A program made the position numbers and the translations under genes. DNA of 64,000 bases. Source: Bigelowiella natans CCMP2755. Taxonomy: Eukaryota; Protista; Cercozoa. The DNA lies in the NCBI GenBank assembly GCA_000320545.1, contig ADNK01000643.1, positions 1 to 64,000 on the forward strand, in the 5' to 3' direction. The notes under the pieces were generated by a model. It had not been told where the DNA came from and searched no databases. It worked only from the letters and a program-made list of their open reading frames with translations. This document shows, piece after piece, positions 6,721-57,890 of this stretch; within the stretch, counting starts at the first letter, position 1, and the number at the start of each line of letters is the position of its first letter.

Positions 6721-7429
6721 TATAAAGGTATTCTAATGTGGCAGTCCTCGCGTGCAAAGACTCAATTCTGTACTTGGTTCATTTCACTACTATGTAAATT
6801 GCGCATTATTTTGGTACTTCCTAGTTTTGGTGTTTTAAGATTATTACATATCTTCTGGCTGGTTTGCCCGAATAGCACTCCGAACAAGGCTGAGCCTGCT
6901 TAGTAGGGAGTGGGGCACATATTGCATGGCGTGTGTTCGAGTACGTTTGTGAATATATCTCTGTGATTGGTAAATTGACGTGAAAGATCTGTTTCCGTAA
7001 TATGATCCTGGAATCGTATGCTTTCTGAAACAGGCACCTGCTGCGCCGCGGTATCGCCGAGGCGCGATCACCATTCCATCTAGACCATTGTAGCCTTCCG
7101 TTTTTTCCCAACGGCCAAACGACATTGTTATTATTGTTATTTCTACTCGGTTCCCGTGAGGTTGGTGCAAAAGCAGTAGCTAGGCCTCCTACTCCTACAG
7201 AAAGCGGTCAAGATTATGCAAGACTTCGCCCCAATTTACTGTTGCACACAAGTTCGGCTACCAGAGAATGGGGCTGCTCTGTGCGGGGGCGGAAGCATCG
7301 CACACAGAGCAGCAATGAGCATCGACATTGTATCGGAAATAGGACGCAGCTCCCCTCAGTTCTGCCCGTGCCGTCTGTCAGTTGAAGATTTGAAATAATT
7401 AATCCATTCGAATGGCGGAGTCGGCGATG

Positions 7430-7545
7430 TGCAATTTTCAGCCTACGACAATGTTTTCCCTCCAATTCTTGTCGCAGACACTAATTCACCTTGGGACCAA
7501 TACGCGATGGTGATTGGCGGAGAGAATGTGACGCTGGAGGCAAGG
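7430..7545. repeat. ~110-bp dispersed repeat, second copy at 37760-37860
   Basis: Shared GCAATTTTCAGCCTACGACA.TGTTTTCCCTC...CTTGTCGCA.ACAC.AATT..CCTTGG.ACCAAT.CGCGA in the same orientation. Confidence 0.85.
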
Positions 7546-7862: not shown

Positions 7863-8480
7863 ATGTCGATGCAGATTTTCGTAAAGACGCTGGTTGGACG
7901 GACCATCACTCTAGATGTGAAAGCAGGCGACACCATCAACACGGTGAAGCAGAAGATACAAGACAAAGAGGGCATACCTCCTGATCAGCAGCGACTTGTG
8001 TTTGCTGGTAAGGAGCTGCAAGATGGTCGGGCTCTTAGTGACTACGGAGTTGAGAAGGAGAACACATTGCATCTCGTTCTGCGACTACGTGGTGGGTCTG
8101 GAGAAATGCAAATATTCGTAAAGACGCTGGTTGGACGGACCATCACTCTAGATGTGAAAGCAGGCGACACCATCAACACGGTGAAGCAGAAGATACAAGA
8201 CAAAGAGGGCATACCTCCTGATCAGCAGCGACTTGTGTTTGCTGGTAAGGAGCTGCAAGATGGTCGGGCTCTTAGTGACTACGGAGTTGAGAAGGAGAAC
8301 ACATTGCATCTCGTTCTGCGACTACGTGGTGGGTCTGGAGAAATGCAAATATTCGTAAAGACGCTGGTTGGACGGACCATCACTCTAGATGTGAAAGCAG
8401 GCGACACCATCAACACGGTGAAGCAGAAGATACAAGACAATGTTCGAACAACCTCGATCATGTTCATGTGCATTTTGTGA
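7863..8480 (+). CDS. Divergent polyubiquitin: 2 complete 79-aa units plus a third truncated at 8440
   Basis: 237-bp units start at 7869, 8106 and 8343 ([18 protein letters not shown]...LRLRGG) joined by an SGE linker. The third unit breaks after KQKIQD. May be a pseudogene. Confidence 0.9.
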
Positions 8481-9400
8481 GCGCTTTGAGAGCATGTGAA
8501 AGCAAATGAAATTTAGGATGACATTGCAATGCAAGCCAATGACCTGCATCGACACTTTTGCAACCGTGCTCACCATGGACATGTGGGTTTGCATTTGCGT
8601 GCCATTGCCGGTCATTGCGTGCGAACAAGTGAAGTTGCGAATTGGGAAATTTTGACAAAACCCAAAGACACATTTGGTGCTTGTGATTGAACTGAATGCG
8701 CCAAAGTGTGTTTTTTTGTCATTTCCGAAAAAATGGCCATGTTCATTTGGGGAGGCTAGGATGACGCAATGCACAGCACTTTGCACGCATGTTGCATTGC
8801 TGTGCCTGTCATGACTAGATGATTCCATGATGTTGTCTCATCATCATTGAACGCATTTGCAAACGCATGCAAGGTGCCAGCCAGCTAGCTAGCCAGGCTT
8901 CCACATCATGTGCATGTGTTTGCACGCGGCGCCTTCTCTGATTCTTGCTGGGTGCCATCACTCATCTGTCATGCGCAGTCACTGCTGGACTGGTTTGTTG
9001 TGTGTTTGTTCCAACTTTCGTGTTCCGAGCAGGCGACAAAACATCAGCACATCTTGGCTTGCACAGCATCTAAAGATGTGCGGCTCCTGCTGTTCTAGTA
9101 TCAGTCGCCTAGCATGTGCACTTTTTCCATGTTTCTTGTTCAACCCAAGCTGGCAACTACTTGTATTTGCAATGAGCGATGCGATACGATGTGCATGCTA
9201 GCATGTGCACACAATTGTGCGCGGGGGACTCGTGGCCCAATGCTGCCACAGGCTAACCGCCGCATCGGCAACAAAGTACAACTGGCGACCATGGACATAT
9301 GTCAAATGTTGCTAGGTTGTGCACAGGCAATGAGCTAGCAAATGGGAGACCGCTAGACAGGCCAAAAAAACATCGTGTCACATGCTCATACTGGTATAAT
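8441..9400. other. TpA-depleted, CA/TG-rich intergenic island A
   Basis: Only 3 TpA in 8441-8880 (TTAG, CTAG, CTAG). In 8880-9400 the remaining TpAs are mostly CTAG. Confidence 0.9.
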
Positions 9401-25936: not shown

Positions 25937-26309
25937 CTGATATATTCGATGGATCAAACCAATTTGACATGGATGTAGATGACAAGGAGCTTAGCTGAAG
26001 TTGTGCGGAAATACCGACGCTGCCACCTGTGACGGGTTGTCCGCTACATTTCCCTCCTCTTCGTTCATTGGTGGGCTGCCCCCAATGCTAAGAGAGTATC
26101 TGGCCTCTTCGACTCTCAACGGGGATGCGCAGTGAACGGGTTGTGTGCTCGGATGAGGCCCTTCGCCTGGGTTTGGCCAGGCGATTGTCGTGAGTCGAGG
26201 AGTCGAGGTGGCGAGCCCGTGTGTGTTCCTTATCCTCGGTTTTCCCGCCAATAAAATCCTTGTCGCGCTTGAGAAACAGGACGTATTTCTTTGTTTTTTG
26301 TTCCGATAT

Positions 26310-27300
26310 CTCGAGACATTCATCACACTGTCACATCAGAAATGAGGCGTGGGCTGCGTGGCTCCTGCCCTAGTGTGCAATTGCTAGTGTGCCTGCCTGA
26401 CATGCCCGAGCATTTGCAGCTGGTCGCCGATGGGCGCTTTGGCAGTGCAACCACTGTGGCGTTGCAATGTTTCCTGTGCGATCATGGACACAAGGCATTG
26501 CGCACGTCCAAACCCAAAATCAGCCACCACCGCAAAAGAAACTCGACAACCTGGCAAGCATCGATGGGGTTTGGGGATCTTGCAATCTCACTCTGAGAAA
26601 ATGGTGCAGATGTTTTTGAAAAGCAATGTGGGTGGTGCGCGATCAAGCGAACAGCATCGTGAGGAAATTTTTGTGGATTGCAACAACCCGGACTGAAGAT
26701 CATCTAATCATTCTGGCATTGGTTGAGTTCAATGTGCGCTGCGGTCATCGCGAACTTTGAAGATGATGCAAATTGGAAGTCCGTTGTTGCGTGCGATGTG
26801 AGATCTTTTCATTGCAGAGTTTCATGACCATAGTTCCGTGTTTCATCAGAATGTCGTGTTGATTTCCTCATTGCACGCAACAATTTTCCATCATGCAGTG
26901 TGCGTGCATGCCATGTGCGCGCATGCATGCATCCAAGTAGCGGCCATTTTCATGACTCATCAGCTAGCGATGCAGACGACAGAGTGCCAATATGACACAC
27001 TATAGAGACTCCATGAGTGTCTATGCACGTGCATGGACGTCTCTGCACGTGCAAGTGCATCTGTTCCAATGCCGGCCTTGATCCACATGCGTGTGCATGT
27101 GTCCCACGCATCGCATCGCCACGTAGCCACGTGCATGTGTGCCTTTTTTCATGCGCACACGACACATGGTGCTTCATTTCTATTATCACTTCATTGTGAG
27201 TTTGCACCACGCATGCACAGCATGTGTCGTACCTAGCATTTCAGCTAATCAACAAATGATGGCATGGATGTCACATTCTACTCACATGCATGTACTTGCT
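26310..27300. other. TpA-depleted intergenic island B
   Basis: 6 TpA in 26311-26989: CTAG x3, CTAA, ATAG, GTAG. Confidence 0.9.
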
Positions 27301-30381: not shown

Positions 30382-33300
30382 ATGCAAGCCTTTGCACGGA
30401 GTAAACGCTTCACCACTTTCGCAAAGCTTTTGCGTTCTTCGAGTTGTAAGAAGAGAGCAGCGGTTCGTCGAACAGCCTCCAGACGGAACGTGGCCGCCTT
30501 TTCTACTCATTCCATAAGTTCAGAGGTCATAGTATATAAGCTTATTTAAATTTGTTACTACATATCTAAATTTAACTTTTTGCCACAGACCCCTCAACAA
30601 ATTGATGAAACCCAGCGACGTATCGATAAGAAAACTTCAGCAACTAGAGCACGTTCCCTGGTTTCTCTCAAGGACGACTGTGACCTGCAAAATGATTTCG
30701 ATGAAACCACTATACGCTATGTAGCTTGGGCTTATGTCGAAAGGATACTCGAGCATTTGAAAGATCCCTCGGTCGGTAGTGATGGAGAGGCAATCATACG
30801 AGCCTTCTCAGCTCTGGAATTTCTCTCTCAAGGAATGATAACAAGTCTGAAGGACTTTTCGCCTAAAAGTGCACAAAGGGATTCTGTTATCGACTCTCTG
30901 CACTGCGCAGTCGATACATGGAGATCTCTATTTCTTAAGCGGATCTTTCCCAGGTTTGACCCTGAAAAGGGCGAAGCTCGGTCAAACCTTTTCGACCTTC
31001 AATCGCGCGAGGCGACGAGGAAACTAATTCAAGAGTTGCAGTTTGATCAGGAAATCGGAGAAGCGAGCGAAACATTCAAGCACATCGAGGTTTTCTTCCG
31101 CGGATCCCATCAAATATGCGAGGTTGTGTTTTGGGTCCAGCGACAACTCTTAAAGAGGTTCCAAGTCCATCAAGAGCATAGAGATCTGTGCCTTTATAGC
31201 ACAAATGTATGACCAGCTCTCGCATCAGATGACGAATCTAAAATATATGGTACATTGACCAAGCTAACGCTTTTAGGGTTTCTTTTCCTACTCAATTCCT
31301 GCGGAGAGTTGAACGTAATGTTTTGGGAAATTAGGACATCTACGAGTATGCTCGTTATCGACCAGCACTTACGGGGACATCTGGCGCTGGTTCATTTCAG
31401 CTGCGATTTCTTAAGCGCCAAACTGATGCAGTGTTCATGGTAATAAGTACAATTTTTGGATTTTTCCTTCTAACACAAAAGTATAGTCGGGATGAGTGTT
31501 TGCATCGTCAACATCTAGCAACGATCCTGCGAGAAAAAGTAGAACAAAAATCGTAATAATGCCTAGAAACGTATTCATATAATTTTGGATATCTCCATGT
31601 AGTCTTCCCTGAGCATGCTGGAAGCTTTACGGATGGAGAACAGCACTGATAGTGCGGAGAGTGAAGGGAAATTATTTGGAGACATAGAAGGGAAGACGCA
31701 AAAGATTAGCGCGCTTTCTGAAGAAGAAGTCGATCGCATTGTTGACGATTTTGCTCTCTTATTAAGTAAATGCTTCATTCCCACAATGAGAGAATAATTC
31801 TTCCTTCATAGAGCTTCCTCCCTGTGCCTCTATATTTAATTTGGTTTTATTCTAAATTCAAATGACAGGCACCCCCGGGACACCAGAGTACGATCTGGCA
31901 CTTTCTGTACACTCTCTTGTTACTTCGGATCTGCTTTTCTGGAATCATCATGCGATGCTCGCAGCTTGTAGCATCGGTCTAAACACCCACGGAACAATGT
32001 CCATGTCCGTATCGATGCTGTTCAAGCGCATCAACCAGCGGTTGAACAAGTCCACAATGCTCAAGGCCCTATCCGAAGTCAGCAGCAAGATTGAGGCAAG
32101 CGACCCTGAAAACCACTGGATCACGGTCGACTATGCGGGCAAAAGGCTAGGAAAGGCCATATTTGAGAAGCTGGACTACTCTAGGAGCCGTGAAGTGAGA
32201 CAGAAAATAGAGGTAGATCAAAAGGATATTCTGAGCAGCCGATACGTTGAGAAATCACTCTACCGCCGGTACTTTGAGTGGGAGAAGTTGGCCAATCTGA
32301 ACGAATACCTACGATTCGAGACGTTCGGCTCAGGACTTCACATCAGCTCTGCGCCAAATATCGTTGCTGAGGCGATGGAAAAGCACATGTTGATGGGAAA
32401 TGACATATGGGGACACTACTTTGAGAGCACATTACCGCGAATACAGAGCACCGTCCTGCGGTTGCTAGATTTACCTGAGGGGGGGCACTGGACTGTCACT
32501 GAAGGCGCAAACACGACGGAGTTTCTACCACGAATCTTTTCGAGCGCACTGAGTGCAAGCACTGGGAAGACCCATATTGTAACCACCGATTCCGAGTTCC
32601 TCGCCGCGGACCGTGCTTTCGCTGAGAGGAGGGATTGCGTCTCAATGGTACCCTTCGGAGTCGGCTGCGACTTCAAAAAGACCCTTGACGACATCGCTGC
32701 GTTGGTGCGATCGCGGTCAGACGTAGGGCTGGTGTTTCTGTCACAGGTATACTCGAATACACAGGCTAGCTTGACTGAGAAGGAATTTGGAGACTTTCTT
32801 GGTTCGATCCCTGCAGAGGTGGCGGTGTGCGTTGACGTTACACAGGGCTTCTGCAACACTCCCTTCTCCTGGGGGAATGCGCTAGGGGGGGGCAGAACCT
32901 CCCCAGTGTACATAACGGGCACCTTCGTCAAACACGGAAGGGCAGGAGAAGGTGTTGGGTTCTTGGCACATCCTCGAGTCACCGCGGAGAGACTCCGGCC
33001 TCAGAACTCCGGCTGGACCGCATGTTTGTCCGGCCTTGGATCAGCCTCCACGCGATGCACGGAAGGGAGGGCAGCCTTCGATCAGGGCCTAGAATGGAGG
33101 GGAGGTACCCCTGCGAACTTCGCACACCTTGAGCTCGCAGTGCACACGTGGGATACCCTTCTTTTTAAGGAAAATAGGACGCTGTCCGACTTTCATGAAT
33201 ACGTCCAGGATTTGATCAAGCTGTTCCTCGATACGCTCGATTTCCAAGGCGTGGAAATTCTGAACCGACACAATCTGCTCGAGCGTGAGCGCAGGAAAGC

Positions 33301-33615
33301 GTTCCCTCACAGGGCATCAAATGCCCTCGTGTTTGACGTTGGTGAGAGAGCGAGTGACCTCCTGGACTACTTACGACAAAGCCACGGTGTGGTTTGTGAT
33401 TGCCGGAATTCAAGGTAATGTCACTGATTGTGTTCTTTGGTTGGACCGACGTGTTTACATCTTAAACGATATTCGTCATGAAAAGACCGGTCTATCATAT
33501 TCAATTGATTTTCTTCAGGTATGTTCGCGTGGGATTCGGCATCGAGCATGGTCCTGCACAAGTCCAAATTCTGGCGAACGCTATATCAAGTTATGAGGAA
33601 GGCCAGCAGAAGTAA
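30382..33615 (+). CDS. PLP-dependent class V aminotransferase/kynureninase-like enzyme with N-terminal TDO-like region and transit-like leader
   Basis: FLSQVY, VCVDVTQG, PLP-lysine region GTFVKHGRAGEGVGFL, RPQNSGWTA, GGTP, YVRVGFG. N-terminal EVFFRGSHQICEVVF and FWNHHAMLAACSIG..GT. Confidence 0.75.
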
Positions 33616-36322: not shown

Positions 36323-37731
36323 GATTGGTAGTAGTATGGTTAGTCGTTGTAGGATTGGTAGTAGTATTAGTAGTAGGCAGCATCGGTGGAAGTAGCATCA
36401 TGCAGCGGGACAATAGTTGTGCTAGTAATGATGCCTGGTAACGAAGATTTCATCTGCGGACCGGCCTTCAACAACGTCGTTGATCACAGTGTTCTCAGGG
36501 GTCGGTAAGATGGAATCCACGTGCACGAGGCGCAACGAGGAAGCAGCCGAGGATGAGGACGACGACGATGACGCAGAAGGTTGCATCACCGAAAACACTT
36601 CGACGTAACTTCCCCTATAGCGTTAGATTATTTTTTCAATGGAAAGCAAACGATGCAAGAAGGCAGTCTGAGGGGCAAAAAGGTGACATTTAGCTAATTT
36701 TGTCCTGTGGATTCTCAAACTTTTGCACAGTGCTGAGCAACAATCACTTGCATTATGAAACCTTATTTTCAGAAGCAGAGGCTCCCATTGTTTGTTTTTC
36801 TAGGAAATCGGAAATTAAGTCTTACTCGCCCTGGAAGGGGTGCGATACAGCGTAGAGTCTATTGGTGGCATTCGAGTAAAAAATGCCTAAGGAGTGAAAC
36901 AATCACACAGTACATATTAACATACAAGAGAGAGAGAATGTTCCGTTCCTTACATGACAGTTGGCAGTCATGATCATGAGAAGGTCACAGTGACTATGAA
37001 TATCGCCACCCGTTACTTCACACGCTCTTAACGCATGATTGTGCCAATTCGAAAGGTTTGTTATCAGGGACCGTGTGGTTGGAACCTCCGCCCCTCTGGG
37101 AAGTTCTCAATGGTGAGCGGCGTCGGCATCGACATGGAGGTTTCACGAATAGAGTTTAGATCGAGAGCAAAAATGAATCCTTGCTTGGCCGGCCCCTGCG
37201 TCCCTGTGGCGAATACACCCTGCAGGTCGCCTGCAGATCCGAAGGCAATCTGAGATCCGATGGAGGGCCATTTAGGGAATCGTTATGAGTAATTGTTGAG
37301 ATGCGTAGCATAACGTACTGACCCCATTCTTGTACATTGTAAAGTCCTCTGAGTTGGCGAGAATCTCACTTCCCACATTCTCGCAACGGAGCTAATAATT
37401 ATAATGAATGAGGATGGTGATGTTAGCGAGGACGATGAAGAGGAAAGAGGGGGGGATGGAAACAGATGTTTGTGGTGAAATTCACAGTGATGCCAGAAAA
37501 TCCCTGCGCACACTTACATCATATGTCACGTCACCCTTGAACACGCCAAGAAGGAGGGCCACGTAACCCCCCCATGCCAGCGCCGGTCTGTATGAAAGGC
37601 GAACAACAAAAAGTCGAATACATTCATCCTAGTGTTTCATCGGGCGAAATCGGGAAAAGATCTCTCCCACGCTACGAGAGGTAGATCTAAAAGCATTACA
37701 CGAGGATGCAGGTGACGAGGCGGCACAGCAT
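34534..37731 (-). CDS. Paraoxonase/arylesterase-like beta-propeller (PON-like), multi-exon
   Basis: Signal anchor MLCRLVTCIL|TGAGMGGYVALLLGVF; ANSEDF; FIFALDL; FQPHG|IFYSNATNRLYAVSHP; SYVEVF; INDVVEG; FTNDN; MIDNL. These match PON motifs in order. Confidence 0.82.
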
Positions 37732-37795
37732 CGTTCCGAACGAGCTCGGAAGGTGTGAGCAATTTTCAGCCTACGACAGTGTTTTCCCTCTCTAC

Positions 37796-38700
37796 ATCTT
37801 GTCGCAAACACCAATTTGCCTTGGAACCAATGCGCGACTGTGACGGGGGAAAATGCTGACAACCATCAACTCACTGAAGTTGGTTCGAGGCACGTGCTGC
37901 GTTTCGCACACTGCAAGTGTCTTGCAACACTTTGGAAATGCAGTTTCTCATCGTTGCTTCATTGTTTCAATGTTGTGCAATGCTTGGAATGCACGTGAAC
38001 GCACTTCGTTCACAACATCAACGGGTCGACACTTTTTTTCAAGAAAGAAGCAAGCGCCCAGCGTGCCAGCACGGTCGTGCATGCTGGCATGCCAGCACGC
38101 TCACATCATCAGCGCGTGTCTGCAGCTGTCACAAAACCATCCGACAGAAGTGTCTGGACGTGTGCACGTTGCACGTCGCTGCACATCTTTGGGTCAACAT
38201 GCATGCGTGCACGAGACGGATGGCACATCTGTGCATGTGCAATGCACATGCAAATGCATCAAGACGTCTCCAGATCTGTGGGACACATCTCGATGACCTA
38301 GCGATGTGCATGCTGGCATGCTGTCTGTTGTGTGCTCTGTGGACACTGCACTGAGCGCGACATCAACGGCCAGGATGTGCCAGTGTGGATGCTTTCAAAT
38401 GCATGAAACAGCGAAACAGCACGATCTGCTAGCCATGGATGTGGCAGAGACAAACAACAATTTCATGACATGTCCAACGCAATCGCATCCGTCTCACACT
38501 GCACTGCGCAAGCGACATCGGCGACAGGATGTGAATGCTTTCAAATGCATGAATTTGCACAGAAAATGCACAATGGCCGAGACAAACAGATGCATGCAAC
38601 ATGAGCGCTGGCCGCTTCATCAAATCCGTCTCACATACACTGCATGTCTAGACTGTCTAGCTGTGTTTCTGTCATTACTAGGTTATTAATATGCTTCTAG
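37796..38700. other. TpA-depleted intergenic island D with internal ~150-bp tandem duplication
   Basis: 2 TpA in 37796-38635, both CTAG (38299, 38430). CAGGATGTG...GCTTTCAAATGCATGAA...GAGACAAACA...ATCCGTCTCACA occurs twice (38371, 38525). Confidence 0.92.
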
Positions 38701-38793: not shown

Positions 38794-41691
38794 CTACTCT
38801 TTTGTAGTTTCCATCAGAAAGTCAAAAAGCGCAGACTCATGAAGCCGCCGCCGGCCCTTCTTTTTTGCGTACAAAAGAAGCCTCTTCCACAGCCACGAGG
38901 AGCTCTTGCCAGCTTTCAAAATAGCCTCCACTACTTGTTCGAGACCCTCGGTGCGATTGTCGCCAAAAGTGTGGTACAGCACCTTCTTCTTCGCCTCGGA
39001 GCAACCTATCCACTGCAGCATGGCCTGGAAAAATAGCCGAGTAAGTTGTTGCTTCTTCACGAACAGCTCTATCTATACTTGACGTGATCCGGAGAAAATC
39101 TGCCTGTTTCTCTTTACCGAAGGGTAAGAAGAAAGAAAAAAGGGCTGCGGCTGAAAGATTTTTGCATAATTTGTCCAGTTTAGCGTGCTGATAGCATAGA
39201 GAAACATCTTAGTTCATACGACGTATTTGTACCTTGAGTGGAATATCCCCCCCAAAGGCGCCACAGCCCCAATTTCCAGTTGCAAACGTATCGAAGGCGT
39301 ACTGTTTCGGAGTCATGACGGCAGCGTCTTTCGACTCCTCTATTGTGCTATCTATGGATTGCTTACCTAGGAAGGATAAACGAGATTTAATAATGACAAG
39401 CTTTGACGCTCTTAATCAAAGATAGCAGTCAAAATGAGTCAAATGCGACGAAAGCCGGCTTTTCAGATGGGCTATGTCCATGGTTCGATTCTTGTCAGCA
39501 AAGGACCTGCATCCGGGTCGTAAGCCGTGAGTTTTTCCCCAGCGCAAGTGAGCTCGTTGGGGACATCAACAGCGACGAAGGTCTTCACAATCTCGCGCAT
39601 CATAATCTCCTTGCTGTATTGATTAAACTGACGTGATCAGCCAAGGTATCAGTGTCTCCCAGAGTATATCATCAAAGAAGTTGAAAACCAAAAGCTACGG
39701 CACAGAGTCCGCATCCATAATTGCGCTAAGATGATTTTTACATAAATTGCAAGTGTAAAGGCTCATCCATTGTCTGACCCTCCACCAGTCCAAATTTTTG
39801 GTCAAAAAAGTTATTCTCTCATCCTTCATCTTCCCCTTCACAAGTACCGAAAAAGCAACGATTGCATCAAACGCGATGATGACGTTTGATATGCGACGTT
39901 TGGGATCGAGTGGTGTCTTATCCTTGAAGTCTCCAGCATACTTGAACCCTCGTGCATAACCAGTGTGCTTTGAGAAACGCTCTGCGCCAACTGATGAGTA
40001 ATGAAGGCGAAAGGTTGACACCCAGCGTATATCAGATCAAACTTGCTGCATTGACTGGATGCGTCTCGTTTTTAACTCATTTCTCAAACCCCCCCGAGCT
40101 TTCTTGTACAATCGGCTGCACTCATTGCATTACACACGCACACGCACACGCACACGCACACGCACACACCAACCTAAGGTGATGCTTTCGTTAGCCAGCA
40201 TGACTTCACAGAAGAGCATTGAGCACAGACACTCTGGTTTTTCGAGAAACAGTATCTCTTCTTGGACGCAACCCGCTTGCAGCACACCGCCCCCGATCCA
40301 CTCATTCGCGAAATCTGCCTGTAGACATCTACATCGCGCACGCATTGCGAGTACGTTACGACAACAAGGGGTAAATACAGAGGTAAAGGAAAGGGGGGGG
40401 AGAGAGAAAGAGAATGAAGGAGTTGACGCAAATCATAAATGGGTGCTCCTGTCGTTCTGGTTGCTGCTTCTTCTTCTTCTTCTTCTTCTTCTTCTTCTTC
40501 TTTTCCAAGCGACATGGTCGTATCTAATCGCGCATACCCATCAGCGTCTTCGATCATGTGACCGACAGGAAGCACTTTGAATTCCGTGAGCTTAGTGTCT
40601 TCTTGCGGCTCAAACTCCTCTGCATTCTTCAGGACGAGGCGATGAAAACTCACGTTGCGCTCGCTGATACCCCCAACTGCGAGACGGAAAAAGTAGTGCA
40701 GGAGGCACTTCGAATGCTCCTCACAACGAGAGAAAACGCCAGCGAACGCAAGCTCCGGACAGTTCCGTCCTAACACATTTACGAGCTATTTAGAGCTACC
40801 ACGCAACGCAGGACAGCCATATGGTTTCAATCTAGTGGTAGACAGCAAGTCACTTTCTAGGAAATGATGGCCATCGCCTTCAAGGTGATGCAGAGGGAAG
40901 ACAAGGGGGGGGTTAGTACCTGATGGAAGCAGGTCAAAGAATGCACAAGCCAGGATCACCGCGCATTGGTGAGCTGTGAGCGTCAATTTAGCTGGATACC
41001 CTTGCCGCAATAATGGAATGCTCTTCGCGTCAGCAAACTGCACAGGGAGTTGCAGGATTAGCTCTTGAACAAACGGCAATATCTTCGAGAAAAATTTCTT
41101 TCCTTCCTCCCCTAGATACGGGATGGGTAAAGAGGGAGAGAGAGAGAGAGAGAGAGAGAAAGGTGAAGGCGTCTCGTCAGCCCATTTCTAAGTTCTCTGG
41201 TTTTCGCCATCATTTCCATCTACTACCCATCGAGTCAACCGCCTTGCAGAGGGCCTTGTAACGATATGTCTCTTCTTTGTGTGGGTTGAGATCACTGGCT
41301 AGTTTCTCAAAGTCATCCCATTTCTCAACCTAAATGAAAGATGAGCTATGGAATTTCGACAGCGACCTGGAAGCCACAGTTCATTTTCATTCGCACGCAA
41401 AATGGCCTCTGGTGAGCGTCTTTACCTTGGTTTCGGAGAGAATTTTCGAAATCCTCACCCACATCTGCCCGTCGGAGTGCGGGAGGTCAATCATGTGTTT
41501 CGATGAATCTGAACAGTTCAGTGCAATTGGATTTAGAAAGGTGTGCATGCATCACAAATGCTGTCTACATTTCGACCGTTTTTGCATCTTCGAGAGCGTT
41601 TCTCACCCCCTTGTTCACTCTCCCCTTCCATCGCCTTCTCTTGATCCTTCTTCCTCTTGGAGGGGGCACTAGGTCCGTCTTTCTCTTCCAT
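38794..41691 (-). CDS. PARG: Poly(ADP-ribose) glycohydrolase
   Basis: QADFANEWIGGGVLQAGCVQEEILF catalytic motif; GAERFSKHTGYA; IIAFDA; ATGNWGCGAFGGD; MLQWIGCS. Confidence 0.93.
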
Positions 41692-41824
41692 CTCTCCGGT
41701 TTCTTCGGTTTCGGGTGAGCGTTCTCAGGCGTTTTTTCGCTACGACATCTGAATATCCTCGTAGCATCTAGTCGTAAATCAAGGACGATTTCATCGGCAG
41801 AAAAATTCCGTGAAATTTCCTAAT

Positions 41825-42893
41825 GCAGGCTTGATTTCCGAGAGAAGCAGCCTCTGCTTCTGAAAAGAAAGCTTGATGCATTTGAGTGGAGGTCTTGCGC
41901 CGTCAGTGTTTTGCCGCTAGTGTCATTGCAACACAATGACTAAATCATGCCAATTTGAAAAACCAGCTAGTTGATTTGCTAGTCACAGTCCTCACTGAAG
42001 CCAGTTCGAGGCACTGCATTTCGAACACTGCAAATGTCTTGCAACATTTTGGAAATGCAGTTCATCATCATTGTTCATTGTTCATTGTTCATTCAATGTT
42101 TGGTTCGTGCCATTTTGCACGATCCCCGCTAGCTTGCTAGTCAGTCCTCACTGAAGCCAGTTCGAGGCACTGCATTTCGCACTTTGCAAGTGTCACGTCA
42201 CACTTTGGAGATGTTGTTTTTCATCATTGTTCATGTTGTTCATTGTTCACAATGCAAGTGATTTTCTCAGCACTGCCACAAAGTGTGAGAATCCATGGGA
42301 CGAAAATTTTGCCCCGCAGACTGCCTTCTTGCATCGTTTGCTTTCCATCGAAACAGTGATCCAACGCTGTGGGAAGTCGTGTCGAAGTGTTTTCGGATGA
42401 GATGTGCAACCTTCTGCATCATCGTCGACGTCCTCACCCTCCAGCCCTCGGCTTCCTCGTGGAGCTTGCCTTCGGCAGGCGGTCTTTTTGCTGGAGACAC
42501 CCGTGTGCATGTGAGTGACAATCTGGACAATGACAATGATGACCACACTTCCAAAACGTTGTGAGACGTTCGCAGTCAGCAGTGCACGAAACGCAGTGCC
42601 TCGAGAACAATGAGACAATGATGAAAATTTGTCTGCACTTCCAAAGTGTGACAAGACACTTGCAGTGTGCGAAGTGCAGTGCCTCGAACTGGCTTCAGTG
42701 AGGAGTGAAAACTGTCGAACCAGCTTTGGTGAGGCCTCACCAGCCCTGTGAGGCTGGAAGGGGTGCGACAGCGCAGAGTCCATTGGTGGCATTCGAGTGG
42801 AAAACCCTGAGGAGTGAAACTCATCAACCACACTGCAGCAGTTGCACGTTCGGACATTGGCCATCCAGAGAGAGAGAGACAGAGAGCTGGAGC

Positions 42894-42936
<43 letters not shown>

Positions 42937-43020
42937 TTCTGTTCCTGCTTGCACAAGCATGACAGCTCTGGCAATCATGATCATGAGAAGCATGTCACAG
43001 TGACTGCATGAACATCGCCA
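41825..43020. pseudogene. Rearranged, hypermutated duplicate of PON-like gene fragments (exons and introns)
   Basis: 41825-41865 and 42247-42460 are inverted copies of ~36820-36530; 42754-43020 is a direct copy of 36831-37010. Confidence 0.88.
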
Positions 43021-43420
43021 CCAATCGAGCAACAATGTCCAGATGTGATGGGGAAAGTTTGACAATGATGCAAAGTGGCGATTTTGCATGTTCATTCCTG
43101 CTGCATGATTCAGGCAATTGCTGCATGCAATTCGCTTGCTCATCATGCGTTCGTGTCGCATGAGCTTTTCCACGTGTGCAAGGCGAGAATTGCACGGCGC
43201 GCATGCTGGCATGCTAGAATGATCATGGCAATCCACCCAAATAACCAGTCTTGCAGTGCGCACAACCGAATTGATAATAGACATAGTGACATTGTCATGG
43301 ATGCTGCAAGGTGCTATAATTGCTACTCGTAGACATTGTCCATTGTGTGTGCTGTGTGTGTAGCTAGTGTGATTAGGTGCTGCTAGCGTCCATGACATCG
43401 ATCACAAAAATGCCAATCAA
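41870..43420. other. TpA-depleted intergenic island E (strongest)
   Basis: No TpA between 42139 and 43214. In 41881-42140 there are only CTAG x5 and CTAA x1. Confidence 0.95.
41988..42710. repeat. ~110-150-bp unit CTCACTGAAGCCAGTTCGAGGCACTGC..., in tandem and inverted copies
   Basis: Plus copies at ~41988 and ~42141; minus copies at ~42705-42610 and ~42605-42520; another plus copy at ~37870. Confidence 0.85.
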
Positions 43421-43673: not shown

Positions 43674-43819
43674 TTAAAGTTCCGCGAACTTGTTCTCGAA
43701 GATTTCCTTCATCGTCAGAGCCATCTGATGGACTCGACTATGGGGGGGATTGAACTTGCATGCATTACTGAAAACAAGGCGGATGTCCTCGGCAAACGTC
43801 TGCTTTTCCGTATAGTAAC

Positions 43820-43858
<39 letters not shown>

Positions 43859-44147
43859 TCAATATTGCCCCCACCTCGTTCAATTCACTCTCTAATTCGT
43901 GCAGCGCAGCACACGGATGCAACCATAACTATATAAATGCGGCGTAAGGGCCTTTTGTTGTAGCAGCATTTTTTGTTATTGTTTGAAACGTGAGGTCGAT
44001 CGTTGAGGAAGAGAAGGAGAAGGGCTGAAAAATTCTTCTAGATGATAATTCATCTATATATCCTACGCGTTTACATTTAACACATGCATCGAACTACCGC
44101 GTGCATACAACAACCGCACCACCAACCCAGCCACCATCTACTTACTA

Positions 44148-46087: not shown

Positions 46088-49000
46088 TTATTTCAGGGAC
46101 TTCACCTTTTTGCTGCTACTGCTGCTTCGTACGCTCTTGAGCTGATGTTCGAGGCCTTGTATCTCGCCCTGCACCCTCTCTATCTCGGCACGCGTCTCCG
46201 CAATCGAGAGCATCTTGATGTCGGCAGGGACCATCGCCGGAGTGATTAGGTCAACGTCCTCGCTCCCCACAGCGACCGACACGTCCTTCCTCTTCTTGTA
46301 AGATGGCGGTTTCTTCTGCTTATTCTTCTTCTTCTTCGAGGAGGAGTAGGCGAGGGATCTTGAGATGGCGGCATCGTCACCATCGTCAGTGTTGTCGCTG
46401 TCGTCTTCATCAAACGTCGACTCGACGACGAGCTTGGCGGGGTACCACCCGTTTTGGGGGCCGAGAATCTGATTGCCGACGATTCTCACCTGCGCAAGGC
46501 CTGCATCGCGCCACAACCCATACACGCCCCCCCCTCCTCCTCCTCCTGCTGCGGTGCCCCCAGGAGTAGTATCAAGCCGTGTCCACTGATAGTTTCCAGG
46601 CTTGAACAGCAGCGTCTGCCCCGAGGCGTCCATGTAGCCTTTGAGGACGATCCCATTGGCGAAAGTCACGGTAATGTCCGGGTGGTACCTATGTTTCTTC
46701 GCGAGGGCGCTGCTCTTCTGGCGCTGGGCTGCGGTGGGCCGAGGAGTTGTGAAGGCCGCCGGGGAAGAGATGTTGCGGATCATCTTGGGGATCTTCGGCT
46801 TAGGCTTCGGCTTCGGTGGCGACTGCTGCGGCACGGGGATGTCTGCCCCCCCCCATTCTTTGCGCATGGCAATCACCTTCGCTGGGTACCACCCGTTGAG
46901 CGGTCCCTTGATCTCTCGCTGGCCGATGGTGACGGGCACTTTGACTGCATCGTACCACTGCCCCTTGATGTCCTCGCCCCATGTGGCGGAGCTGGAGGTC
47001 CCTTGGCAGAGGATGAGCCCACCCGTTTCTATAGTGCGGTGCCACTTGTAGCCCCCCTTCCACAGAATCTGGTGGCCCTCGTCCACCACCGATCCTTCCA
47101 GTCTCACCTTGTTGGCGAAGACCGCAACAATGTCAACGCCGGGAAGCAAAGCGCCCTGAGCCCCCTTCTTCTTTTTCTTCTTCTTGCCCCCGAAGGCGCC
47201 CCCTCCTCCGCCCCTCTTGCCGCCCTTGTTCTTCTTGGAGCTCGAAGGCGGTTTGGGGTTGAGCGGGTCGCTATGCCTGACCCCGAGCACCAGCCCAGGA
47301 TACTGACTTCCCTCCCCCAGGATGTCTTTCGAGTCTGAGAGCTGGATTTCCTTGCCATTCTCATCGCTCCAGACGCCGAAGGGGCTTGCAACGCTGTCGT
47401 CGTCGTCTAACGGCGTTTTCCTCCGCCAGCGTTCCCCGCCCGGCGTCCAGAGGAGCCCAGTCCCGAACACGTCGAGCGTGCCCACCATCTTCTTCCCGTC
47501 GGCGAAGCGGGCGGAGATGCGGGTGACACGCGCACCGGTGAGTTGGAGGACCTCGGCGGGGTACCAGGGTTCCAACCCGTAGGTGGGGCCCTTGATCGTC
47601 GCATGGCCGACCTCCACCTTGCTCCCGCCAGCATCGAACCATTCGCCAAGCAGCCCCGAGGCGGCGGAGGCTGTCTTCCGCTCCCATTTGTAGGCGATGC
47701 CCTTGCCCTTCCATTTGAGCGTCTTGCCCTCCTTTTCCAGCACCCCGTGCATCTGCTTCCCATTGGCGAAACGGGCTACCACCCCCCACACACACACCGC
47801 CGCCGACGACGACGACGACGTCGTCGTTTTATTTGCTGTTCCCGCATCAGCTACTTCTGCTGGTTTTTGGCCAACAACAGTGGTGTTGGTGGTGGTGGTA
47901 GCAGTTGTAGTAGTACTACTACTACTACTAGTAGTAGTAGTAGTAGCGGTAGCAGCAGCAGGCGGGGTGACTACGGTGTTGTTGATATCCGAAGAAGTAG
48001 TAGTAGTCGCAGTAGCAGCAGCAGCTGTAGTAAGGGGATTGCTGGCGGTGGCACCAACACCGCTGCTAGCGGAAGGGGAGGAAGTTTTGCTCTCCTTTTC
48101 GTCGGTAGTACTAGTAGAAGTAGGAGGATTTGCAGCAACTGCCGATGCTGTTGTTGCCATCGCCGCCGCCGCTGCCGTCTTCTTCGTCTCCTCATTATCA
48201 TCATCATCGTCCCCCTTCTCTAGCATTGGCATCTCCTCCTCTTCCTCCTCCTCCTCCTCCTTCTCTTCCGTGTTTGGGCGTCGAGATACCGTTACGCCCT
48301 CCTCAGTTTCTAGGGCAGGAAGCTGATTCTTGTCGTCATCTTCGACTTTCATGTCGCGCTGCGCTGAGGAGGAGGAATGTGCCTGCTGCTCTTGCTGCTG
48401 CTGCTGCTGCTGGCCATTGAGGGCCCGTTCTCCTGCAGCACACATTATGATAATGAGAATCTCTCGTGATTATCTAAAGACAAATAGCTAATATAATACC
48501 ACACGCCCCACGCCCTGTAAACAACGACATACACAAGTGGCTTTCCATATTCGCCCGACAGCGTGCTCTCTCCCTCTCCCCCTCCCTCCCTCTGCCGACA
48601 CCCTGTCACACACCGAGGTAGAAAGTGTGCACTATCAACTACGGGATTACTTTACTACCTTCCTGTGGTTGTTCTGTGGATCTTGGGTGCTTTTCACCTG
48701 ACTGTCGGGGCTGTTTACCACCAACAGTAGGAGTCTCCCGCTGCTGTAGCTGCGTTCCCTCCGATGATGCTGGTGTTTTACCGCCCGTTGTAGCTCTCTT
48801 TTCGTCGCTACTGTCTGCAGTAGCATTAGCAGCAGTGGCAGAAGACTCGGACAATGATTTCGATAGTTCTTTATTGGAGGAGTCGGACGATGATCTCGGT
48901 AGCTCTTCATTGCGCGAGTCGGATAATGATCCCGGTAGTTCTTTTTTGCGGGAGTCGGACAATGATTTCGGTGGCTCTTTATCGACCATGCTACTACTAC

Positions 49001-56649: not shown

Positions 56650-57890
56650 GTTGCCGTGCATGTGGCAACCCATGCACCTGCATGTCTGCATCATTTGAAG
56701 ATTCATCTAGATTGTAACCAACACAACAATGACACGAGTACATGATTTGCATCACCCTGCATCTTTCATCTGCTATTGTGCTCCATGATGAAACAAAGCA
56801 GACATTTGTTCATTCGATCAGTTTTTCGCCTTCTGTCATCCTGTCACACGTACCCACAATGACCCATTATCCTTGAGGTGGAGCAGAAACGCATTGCGCA
56901 TTCTGTCGCCTGCACGATGTGTAATCGACAGTTGACACGTGTAGTTCTAGTGCTCAATTGCTAGCGTAGGAGAACACATGTACCCACACAAGTCCGTCAA
57001 ACCCGGTGACGACGGGGTTGTGAACAGTGCAGCGCTTTGAAGCAGCAGGCAGTTGCAGTTAGTCAAAGAAAAGTCATCAGAACTTGTCCGATGGCCAAAC
57101 CTGAAAAAATGACCGAAATGTTGACCAAAATGTCCATTTCCAAGGCCTCAAAGTGTGAAAATTCACACCCGTTGTGTAGCGGATGCACGCTGCGCGTTTG
57201 TTCTCTGCCACATTTTGAATGCTTTTGCGTGTGCGTTTGACCAAATGTGACATGCACGAAAAATTTCAAAGAAATGCGAGCAAATCCAATGTCCATTGCA
57301 TCACATGACGCGCTTGGTCGCGCGCAAAAGCTTCCAAATGCACATTCTGGCGATTCGTTACAGGTTTGACGGACTTGTGCATGCACACCACATGCACCTG
57401 AAAAGCACACATGCTCTGTTCGTTCACATCCATGTGTCCACACATGCACCCATGCCAGCAGACACGCGATGCATCACACCTAGACACGTGCACAGCATGC
57501 GCGTGCCAGATGCTGTGCGACATTGCCATCGATCGACGTGCCGCCGCATGAGTCAGGGTTGCAATGAGAGCATCGTTCCTGCAGCCATCATTCCAGCAGC
57601 GTGTGCATGAATGAATTGCGAAATGATGTGTGCAGCGCAGCTGCCAAAAAAGTTGTCGTCCGCGCAGTGATCGATGGCACGGTCGATGCTAGCGATGCCC
57701 CACAAGTGACGGAGAACAAATTGAGAAGAAAAGAAGAAGAAGTGTGCGAATGAAGCTTAGAGGGACTCGCATTGCGGAACTCAGCCGCCACCACAACCAC
57801 ACAGCACCCAAGCACGCACCGACCTCGATCTCAGCTCGGCGAACGGCCCTTTGCACGTCGCCAAGGGAAGGTTTGATTTTCTAGCGTCTC
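56650..57890. other. TpA-depleted intergenic island F
   Basis: 6 TpA in 57001-57880, five of them TAG (CTAG x2, TTAG x2, GTAG) plus one TTAC. Confidence 0.88.

Follow-up and report, generated by a model that had tools for sequence, protein, structure and literature searches.

The segment at about 41822-43241 of the DNA analysed here is probably a non-coding, rearranged partial duplicate of a PON-like gene in which the dinucleotide TpA has been hypermutated to saturation by a regional process of Bigelowiella natans. The analysed stretch (the window) is 64 kb long and contains both the duplicate and its parent, which form a polarised before and after pair: an intact, conserved host exon lies 5 kb from its dead copy. 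This pair shows that the process can remove every TpA from ordinary host DNA while the parent is spared. The host-derived target, the short, sharp-edged and saturated island and the full sparing of CTAG are what is new here.

The process itself has been observed directly. In a mutation-accumulation experiment with B. natans, 231 of 302 nuclear point mutations were located in an integrated NCLDV region and a virophage region, and 230 of these 231 de novo mutations were A->G or T->C (Mettrop et al. 2026; bioRxiv 10.64898/2026.01.13.699255). The preprint text places all of them on TpA, and its Table S2 lists 4 non-TpA changes among 211 scaffold-10 rows, three in ATG and one in ATT (bioRxiv 10.64898/2026.01.13.699255). 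The rate in the viral regions was ~4-6e-7 per site per generation vs 3.5e-10 elsewhere, which is ~1000-fold higher, and hypermutation was confined to TpA->TpG/CpA in integrated viral DNA, the rest of the genome having an AT-bias of 2.65 (bioRxiv 10.64898/2026.01.13.699255). The NCLDV region spans ~186 kb, is single copy by depth and BLAST and is transcriptionally silent; an ADAT2-like adenosine deaminase, Bn78255, was proposed as the enzyme, a comparison with RIP was made, and similar TpA-depleted windows were found genome-wide in independent resequencing (bioRxiv 10.64898/2026.01.13.699255). The first-pass annotation of the window had postulated a DNA-level, TpA-specific A:T->G:C mutator, had favoured a TadA/ADAT-like deaminase as its chemistry and had presented it as a reverse-RIP hypermutation system. 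Such a mutator does exist, as measured in the B. natans mutation-accumulation lines (bioRxiv 10.64898/2026.01.13.699255), and the favoured chemistry agrees with the proposed ADAT2-like enzyme; since the preprint came earlier and reports the mutator together with its proposed chemistry, the system as such is not new.

The purged island and its parent gene

The window was assigned to nuclear DNA of the chlorarachniophyte B. natans because a 518-aa ORF at 31862-33418 (+) is 99% identical to the JGI model Bigna1/86642 (estExt_fgenesh1_pg.C_120128), a name that also suggests a location on scaffold 12. The host genes with Pfam matches include a polyubiquitin gene, a PTEN-like gene (minus strand), an aspartyl protease gene, a PARG gene (40786-41079 and beyond, minus), a bromodomain gene (43674-43922, minus) and an O-methyltransferase gene (minus). 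An Rfam search of the 64-kb window gave no match. As side observations, Bigna1/86642 is class V aminotransferase-like and its closest non-self homologue, the 39%-identical protein P0002, is encoded on a bacterial-looking metagenome contig (L001, 4246-6831), and the gene may be of horizontal origin; encoded on a bacterial contig, P0002 was uninformative as a guide to eukaryotic islands. In addition, a 785-aa ORF at 46088-48445 (-) lies in a G+C-rich stretch (0.53-0.62) and has no Pfam match, and its TpA are not purged (Rho 0.34-1.18 along the ORF).

The purged island is located between the putative 5' end of the PARG gene and the 3' side of the bromodomain gene. Over its ~1.4 kb the only TpA left are six CTAG and one CTAA, and it includes a TpA-free run of 1077 bp (42138-43215) vs a mean TpA spacing in the window of 20 bp, which would arise by chance with a probability of ~e^-53. 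Ordinary TpA contexts return within ~50 bp on either side. The first-pass annotation had correctly described the zone as purged, but its extent, given as 41825-43020, was too small.

The parent is the part of the PON-like gene at 36549-37010 (-), where TpA density is normal. It takes in exon B (36826-36886, -), the intervening introns and the 5' end of exon A, which starts at 36604 (-). Exon B has AG and GT flanks, is in phase with the neighbouring exons and translates as GIFYSNATNRLYAVSHPFQGE, which aligns to two homologues, P0021 and P0020. These were the two homologues found in an all-against-all HMMER comparison with the exon preceding exon B, and both align over exon B and the start of exon A, P0021 being 52% identical to the PON-like exon of the window. 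Single PON-like exons gave no match against PDB and Pfam, and the family was settled only through P0021, which is similar to PON1 (human or rabbit; chains 1v04 and 4q1u) across the N-terminal blades, over residues 42-171 (E=3e-8); this match justifies the name PON-like. These results support the view of the parent as a genuine coding exon in a PON-like gene. Furthermore, a 3798-aa protein in the public collection (P0019) carries 11 stretches resembling the PON-like exon, which suggests a giant multi-PON-repeat protein in some organism.

Homology among the pieces of the island was found by self-BLAST, and the fates of TpA were determined by gapped alignment. At the left end, A1' (41825-41877, +) is an inverted copy of a PON-like intron (parent ~36755-36835), with a self-BLAST match of 41849-41877 to 36783-36755, and has lost both parental TpA, each via T->G. 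R1 and R2 (41976-42254, +) are tandem copies of a repeat R of ~100-120 nt, 84% identical to each other and 77-82% identical to R5 (37870-37987). A2' (42246-42441, or to 42465; +) corresponds in inverted orientation to the 5' end of exon A with its upstream intron (parent 36549-36759; 75-77% identity over 216-240 nt); it lacks the acceptor AG, carries insertions of 1 nt and 4 nt and retains none of the eight parental TpA. R4 and R3 (42524-42707, -) are inverted copies of R and form arms of 69-75 nt, 89-91% complementary, with R1/R2, so that the window holds two direct and two inverted copies within the island plus R5. B' (42754-42820, or to 42837; -) is a pseudo-exon copy of exon B and its acceptor (parent 36831-36900, 83-87%) with deletions of 1 nt and 2 nt and with the changes Tyr TAC to CAC and TGC and Arg AGA to GGA; the count of five lost TpA previously given for this copy (two to CA, two to TG, one deleted) was exact on realignment. 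A (GA)n microsatellite (42866-42934) has been expanded in the copy, from ~6 units in the parent intron (36926-36937) to ~30, with GAGCTG interruptions. C' (42923-43022, -) is a copy of a PON-like intron (parent 36927-37010, 77%) in which none of the three parental TpA remains, one having been interrupted by an inserted GC (ACT|ATG vs ACTGCATG). Lastly, the right end of the duplicated material is a short match of 43192-43225 to 38069-38103, in the island upstream of the PON-like gene (alignment score 38 vs a shuffle maximum of 25).

The absence of TAA and TAG from islands of this kind leads to long spurious ORFs in several frames, such as a 383-aa ORF at 42247-43398 (-), which has no Pfam match and no homologues. 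A further long ORF in TpA-free sequence was observed at 37853-38689 (+). Island ORFs may be annotated as genes and could make lists of 'unannotated' low-TpA CDS too long.

Other TpA-free islands and the sparing of CTAG

A TpA scan of the 64-kb window revealed five islands of 0.5-1.4 kb, including the one at 41.8-43.2 kb, in which the ratio to expectation is 0.04-0.15 for TpA and 1.6-2.0 for CpA/TpG. The others lie at 8432-8885, just 3' of the polyubiquitin ORF; at 26308-26937, upstream of the PTEN-like ORF (-); at 37794-38635 (from ~37.7 kb), just upstream of the PON-like gene, where R5 is found and two TpA remain (Rho 0.04); and at 56982-57881, between the O-methyltransferase gene (-) and a DEAH-type helicase gene (+). 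The islands are intergenic and several are just upstream of a gene start. For those at 8.4-8.9, 26.3-26.9 and 57.0-57.9 kb, no partner copy was detected within the 64-kb window and no internal inverted repeats were found. A hairpin or dsRNA trigger was therefore rejected, long inverted repeats being confined to the 41.8-43.2 kb island.

[quoted passage not shown] A cluster was defined there as >=3 consecutive 1-kb windows, and no three adjacent windows pass; with no cluster among the four passing windows, such short islands were not covered by the published cluster analysis. The cluster criterion is a detection criterion of the preprint and not a property of the process.

Pooled dinucleotide ratios of the islands were 0.09 for TA, 1.73 for CA, 1.77 for TG, 1.38 for GC, 0.55 for GG and 0.67 for CC, and the tetranucleotides TGCA and CATG were enriched four-fold and three-fold, respectively. 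Conversion of TA to TG or CA would place a new G after T and a new C before A, and we interpret the excess of TGCA, CATG and GpC and the deficit of GG and CC as products of this conversion (TATA -> TGCA, CATG, TGTG, CACA). The islands also have 8-10-mers in common, such as TGCATGCA, CTAGCGATG and TGCTGGCATG. Islands as merely motif-rich promoters were discarded as a candidate explanation, since the same motifs are produced by TA -> TG/CA conversion, and purine-pyrimidine alternation (Z-DNA) was discarded as a defining property because it rises only mildly (0.51-0.60 vs 0.48) and is higher elsewhere. The 9-mer CTAGCGATG is present at three positions of the window (26964, 38298 and 57689), each in a different TpA-free island, and all five occurrences of TGCTGGCATG are inside islands; both may represent motifs or remnants of a shared ancestral sequence. 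Two further observations concern island borders. The sequence at 26950-27150, adjoining the 26.3-26.9 kb island, is rich in GTGCATG and CACGTGCA (CpA Rho 2.0) and retains several TpA (CTAT, ATAG, ATAT), and may be a zone of partial purge or a boundary. An element of ~88 nt, 83% identical, is present at 7428-7513, upstream of the polyubiquitin ORF, and at 37756-37843, upstream of the PON-like gene; two TpA of the ubiquitin-side copy appear as CA and TG in the island-edge copy, and one TpA differs the opposite way.

One context has been spared. The density of CTAG was 2.57 per kb in islands vs 2.81 per kb in the background, a ratio of 0.91, and all other NTAN contexts were at 0-0.21 of background (Fisher p=1e-8). 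In a hand tally of Table S2 of the preprint (n=226), the 3' neighbour of the edited A was A in 71 cases, C in 56, T in 76 and G in 23, and ~22% of TpA contexts have a 3' G in the background of this window, an availability taken from here and not from the viral regions, which makes the comparison approximate. A 3' G thus appears to be disfavoured, and this would make CTAG refractory on both strands. A strict rule by which TAG is refractory was rejected, as two of the five polarised sites offering a TAG context used TAG; there is at most a preference. The hand tally of the scaffold_10 rows also gave 3 A->G changes in TAG and 17 of the strand mirror, T->C in CTA, among 91 A->G and 119 T->C changes overall, a possible strand asymmetry.

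Origin of the TpA loss

Of the 18 TpA that the parent contains over the aligned ranges, none is left in the copy. The statement that all alignable TpA of the duplicated fragment were lost is therefore correct (18/18), although not all losses are transitions: CA was found in five cases, TG in four, CG in one, GA in two and AG in one, and five losses were related to indels. Pure transitions to CA, TG or CG make up 10 of the 13 substitutional losses, and the 8 of 18 non-transition losses comprise three transversions and five with indels. At non-TpA columns, 27 of 354 (7.6%) differ between parent and copy, and at this background divergence the probability of losing 18 of 18 TpA is ~1e-15. The ts:tv ratio was 12:3 at TpA vs 15:12 elsewhere, a difference that is not significant (Fisher p=0.18). 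The pieces of the parent have a G+C of 0.435 with 20 TA, 32 CA and 31 TG, and those of the copy a G+C of 0.498 with 0 TA, 39 CA and 41 TG, so CA and TG gain roughly one-for-one with the loss of TA and G+C goes up. TG and CA outcomes are intermixed inside single pieces and intron sequence is present in the copy, which bears out the earlier claim that both strands were hit and introns kept.

In the explanation that we consider probable, the 5' part of the PON-like gene and its upstream island would have been partially duplicated and rearranged, with repeat R interleaved in both orientations, and after the duplication regional TpA->TpG/CpA hypermutation would have driven the segment to saturation. 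The A in 5'-TA-3' would be changed to G on either strand, so that each TA would become TG or CA. The same process as in the viral regions presumably acted at 41822-43241; its chemistry would be an enzymatic adenine deamination, consistent with the proposal of the ADAT2-like Bn78255, and its targeting would be by locus or domain, not by duplication or foreign origin as such. The process is regional and not a property of the sequence, and it is not symmetric on duplicates: at a distance of 5 kb, the intact parent has retained its TpA, introns included. Moreover, a large part of the island has its homologue in the host PON-like locus, and no significant viral or transposon domain was found by Pfam in the island ORFs, so that the rationale of 'foreign DNA' given in the preprint does not apply here. 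Three points count against this mutational explanation. A pure deaminase yields neither transversions nor indels, which account for 8 of the 18 losses and could have been produced by ordinary mutation over the same period. In the non-PON parts of the islands, CpA/TpG (Rho 1.7-2.0) exceeds by a little what TpA conversion of average DNA would by itself predict. Finally, the siting at gene 5' ends and the common 8-10-mers would also fit a functional constraint.

The same mutator could have been triggered by duplication or repetition through a RIP-like recognition, as the first-pass annotation had proposed under the term reverse RIP. In this regard, both ends of the TpA-free zone fall within ~20 bp of the outermost pieces with homology to the PON locus (left, 41825; right, 43225), and the island carries the multi-copy repeat R in direct and inverted orientation. 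Nevertheless, the parent pieces, 5 kb from the copy, keep 20 TpA, unconstrained introns included, whereas RIP mutates both partners; the three islands described above have neither a repeat in the 64 kb searched nor internal inverted repeats, and the published 186-kb hypermutable region is single copy. Duplication is thus unlikely to be the trigger, and this part of the earlier claim is not supported. The coincidence of the edges gives slight encouragement to a weaker form, in which recognition would apply to an inserted or duplicated segment as a whole, but this leaves unexplained the three islands that are partnerless in the window and the single-copy NCLDV region.

Selection instead of mutation would explain the loss if TpA were deleterious in gene-adjacent regulatory modules, through protein binding, DNA mechanics or an RNA property, and if a fragment landing in such a module were cleaned of TpA by whatever mutations arise. 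Several features are in agreement with this possibility: TpA has disappeared in more than one way (through transitions and T->G transversions, but also through a 2-bp deletion and an inserted GC that splits T|A), ts:tv at TpA is not significantly above that elsewhere, the islands are just upstream of or between genes and have a motif vocabulary in common, and CTAG is kept at background density. However, B. natans has a mutational process of exactly this signature, measured where selection was minimal, and the excess of TGCA, CATG and GpC and the deficit of GG/CC follow from TA -> TG/CA conversion. For these two reasons we rank selection, which we regard as improbable, below the mutator. It would in addition need an acceleration of at least ~16-fold at each of 18 sites in a dead gene fragment.

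A reversed polarity, with CA/TG as the ancestral state and TpA gained in the PON-like gene via C->T at CpA/TpG, would accord with G:C->A:T being the usual bias, also in the rest of the genome (AT-bias 2.65). We compared codons with two outgroup cDNA contigs, L003 and L005, which encode the homologues P0021/P0020. At the Tyr of the FY site the parent has TAC, L003 TAC, L005 TTC (Phe) and the copy CAC, the first-position T being kept in the outgroups; at the Tyr of the LY site the parent and both outgroups have TAC and the copy TGC, and the PON1 alignment retains this Tyr. The Arg codon is AGA in the parent and in L003, CGA in L005 and GGA in the copy, and a TAC of exon A corresponds to TTT in L003, the only outgroup there, and to CGT in the copy. 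Together with the frameshifts of the copy and its missing acceptor, these codons establish the direction as TA -> TG/CA in the copy, in accordance with the polarity assumed in the first-pass annotation. Reversed polarity is refuted for exonic sites and could hold for individual intronic sites; as a general explanation it is very improbable. Lastly, a reverse-transcribed copy of hyper-edited RNA, which the established preference of ADAR-type editing for a 5' U (also cited in the preprint) would favour, or an assembly artefact, is hardly credible, given the intermixing of TG and CA within single pieces, the retained introns, a purged zone that covers repeats and unique sequence beyond the gene fragments, four further islands in the same window and the similar TpA-depleted windows seen genome-wide in independent resequencing (bioRxiv 10.64898/2026.01.13.699255).

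Implications and known systems

A broader reading, which we offer tentatively and think somewhat less probable than its opposite, is that the TpA purge is not aimed primarily at viral DNA and acts on many short, sharply bounded host intergenic domains, with about five islands per 64 kb beside genes, CTAG as the one immune context and no island forming a cluster as defined in the preprint. If true, most of the purged DNA of the genome would be in islands outside the published cluster analysis, and targeting would follow chromatin or transcriptional state and not foreignness or duplication; the window offers a hint that most purged DNA resides in short host intergenic islands and not in viral insertions. 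Short, sharp-edged islands beside host genes call into question both the reading of the process as a defence against foreign DNA and the analogy with RIP, and the sparing of CTAG gives a concrete specificity for any candidate enzyme.

The closest known system is the TpA hypermutation of viral DNA (Mettrop et al. 2026), with which the island shares the species, the dinucleotide target, the products on both strands and the TpA depletion with CpA+TpG gain, to values within the preprint cut-offs; the low share of TAG in Table S2 also fits the sparing of CTAG. The present case is unlike it in its host-derived target, a PON-like fragment and intergenic DNA, in its length of ~1.4 kb, which is below the cluster criterion, in being known from sequence alone and in its saturation (0 TpA in 1077 bp vs a Rho of 0.45 in the NCLDV region). 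With so little TpA remaining, the island would be expected to yield few de novo events in mutation-accumulation lines.

Fungal RIP changes C to T at CpA, creates TpA and hits both repeat partners. As in the present case, the hypermutation is regional, consists of transitions in a dinucleotide context, inactivates a duplicated sequence and strongly skews the dinucleotide composition; here the direction is opposite, as TpA is destroyed, the parent is untouched and keeps its 20 TpA, and unique sequences are affected too. AID/APOBEC enzymes deaminate C (G->A/C->T) and cause hypermutation of retroelements and viruses. They have in common with the island a context-specific, deaminase-type editing of defined DNA targets that leaves a dinucleotide footprint, but the change here is A:T->G:C and the enzyme is only proposed.

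ADAR and ADAT2/TadA-type deaminases share with the island the A->G outcome and the preference for a 5' T/U. ADAR acts on dsRNA and not on genomic DNA, and a retrocopy of ADAR-edited RNA, in an organism with ADAR, would be changed on one strand and spliced, whereas here TG and CA occur within each piece and introns are retained. For the ADAT2 type, adenine deaminases active on DNA have been discussed, namely amphioxus BjADAT2 and evolved TadA (bioRxiv 10.64898/2026.01.13.699255), and a DNA activity is proposed for Bn78255 of B. natans.
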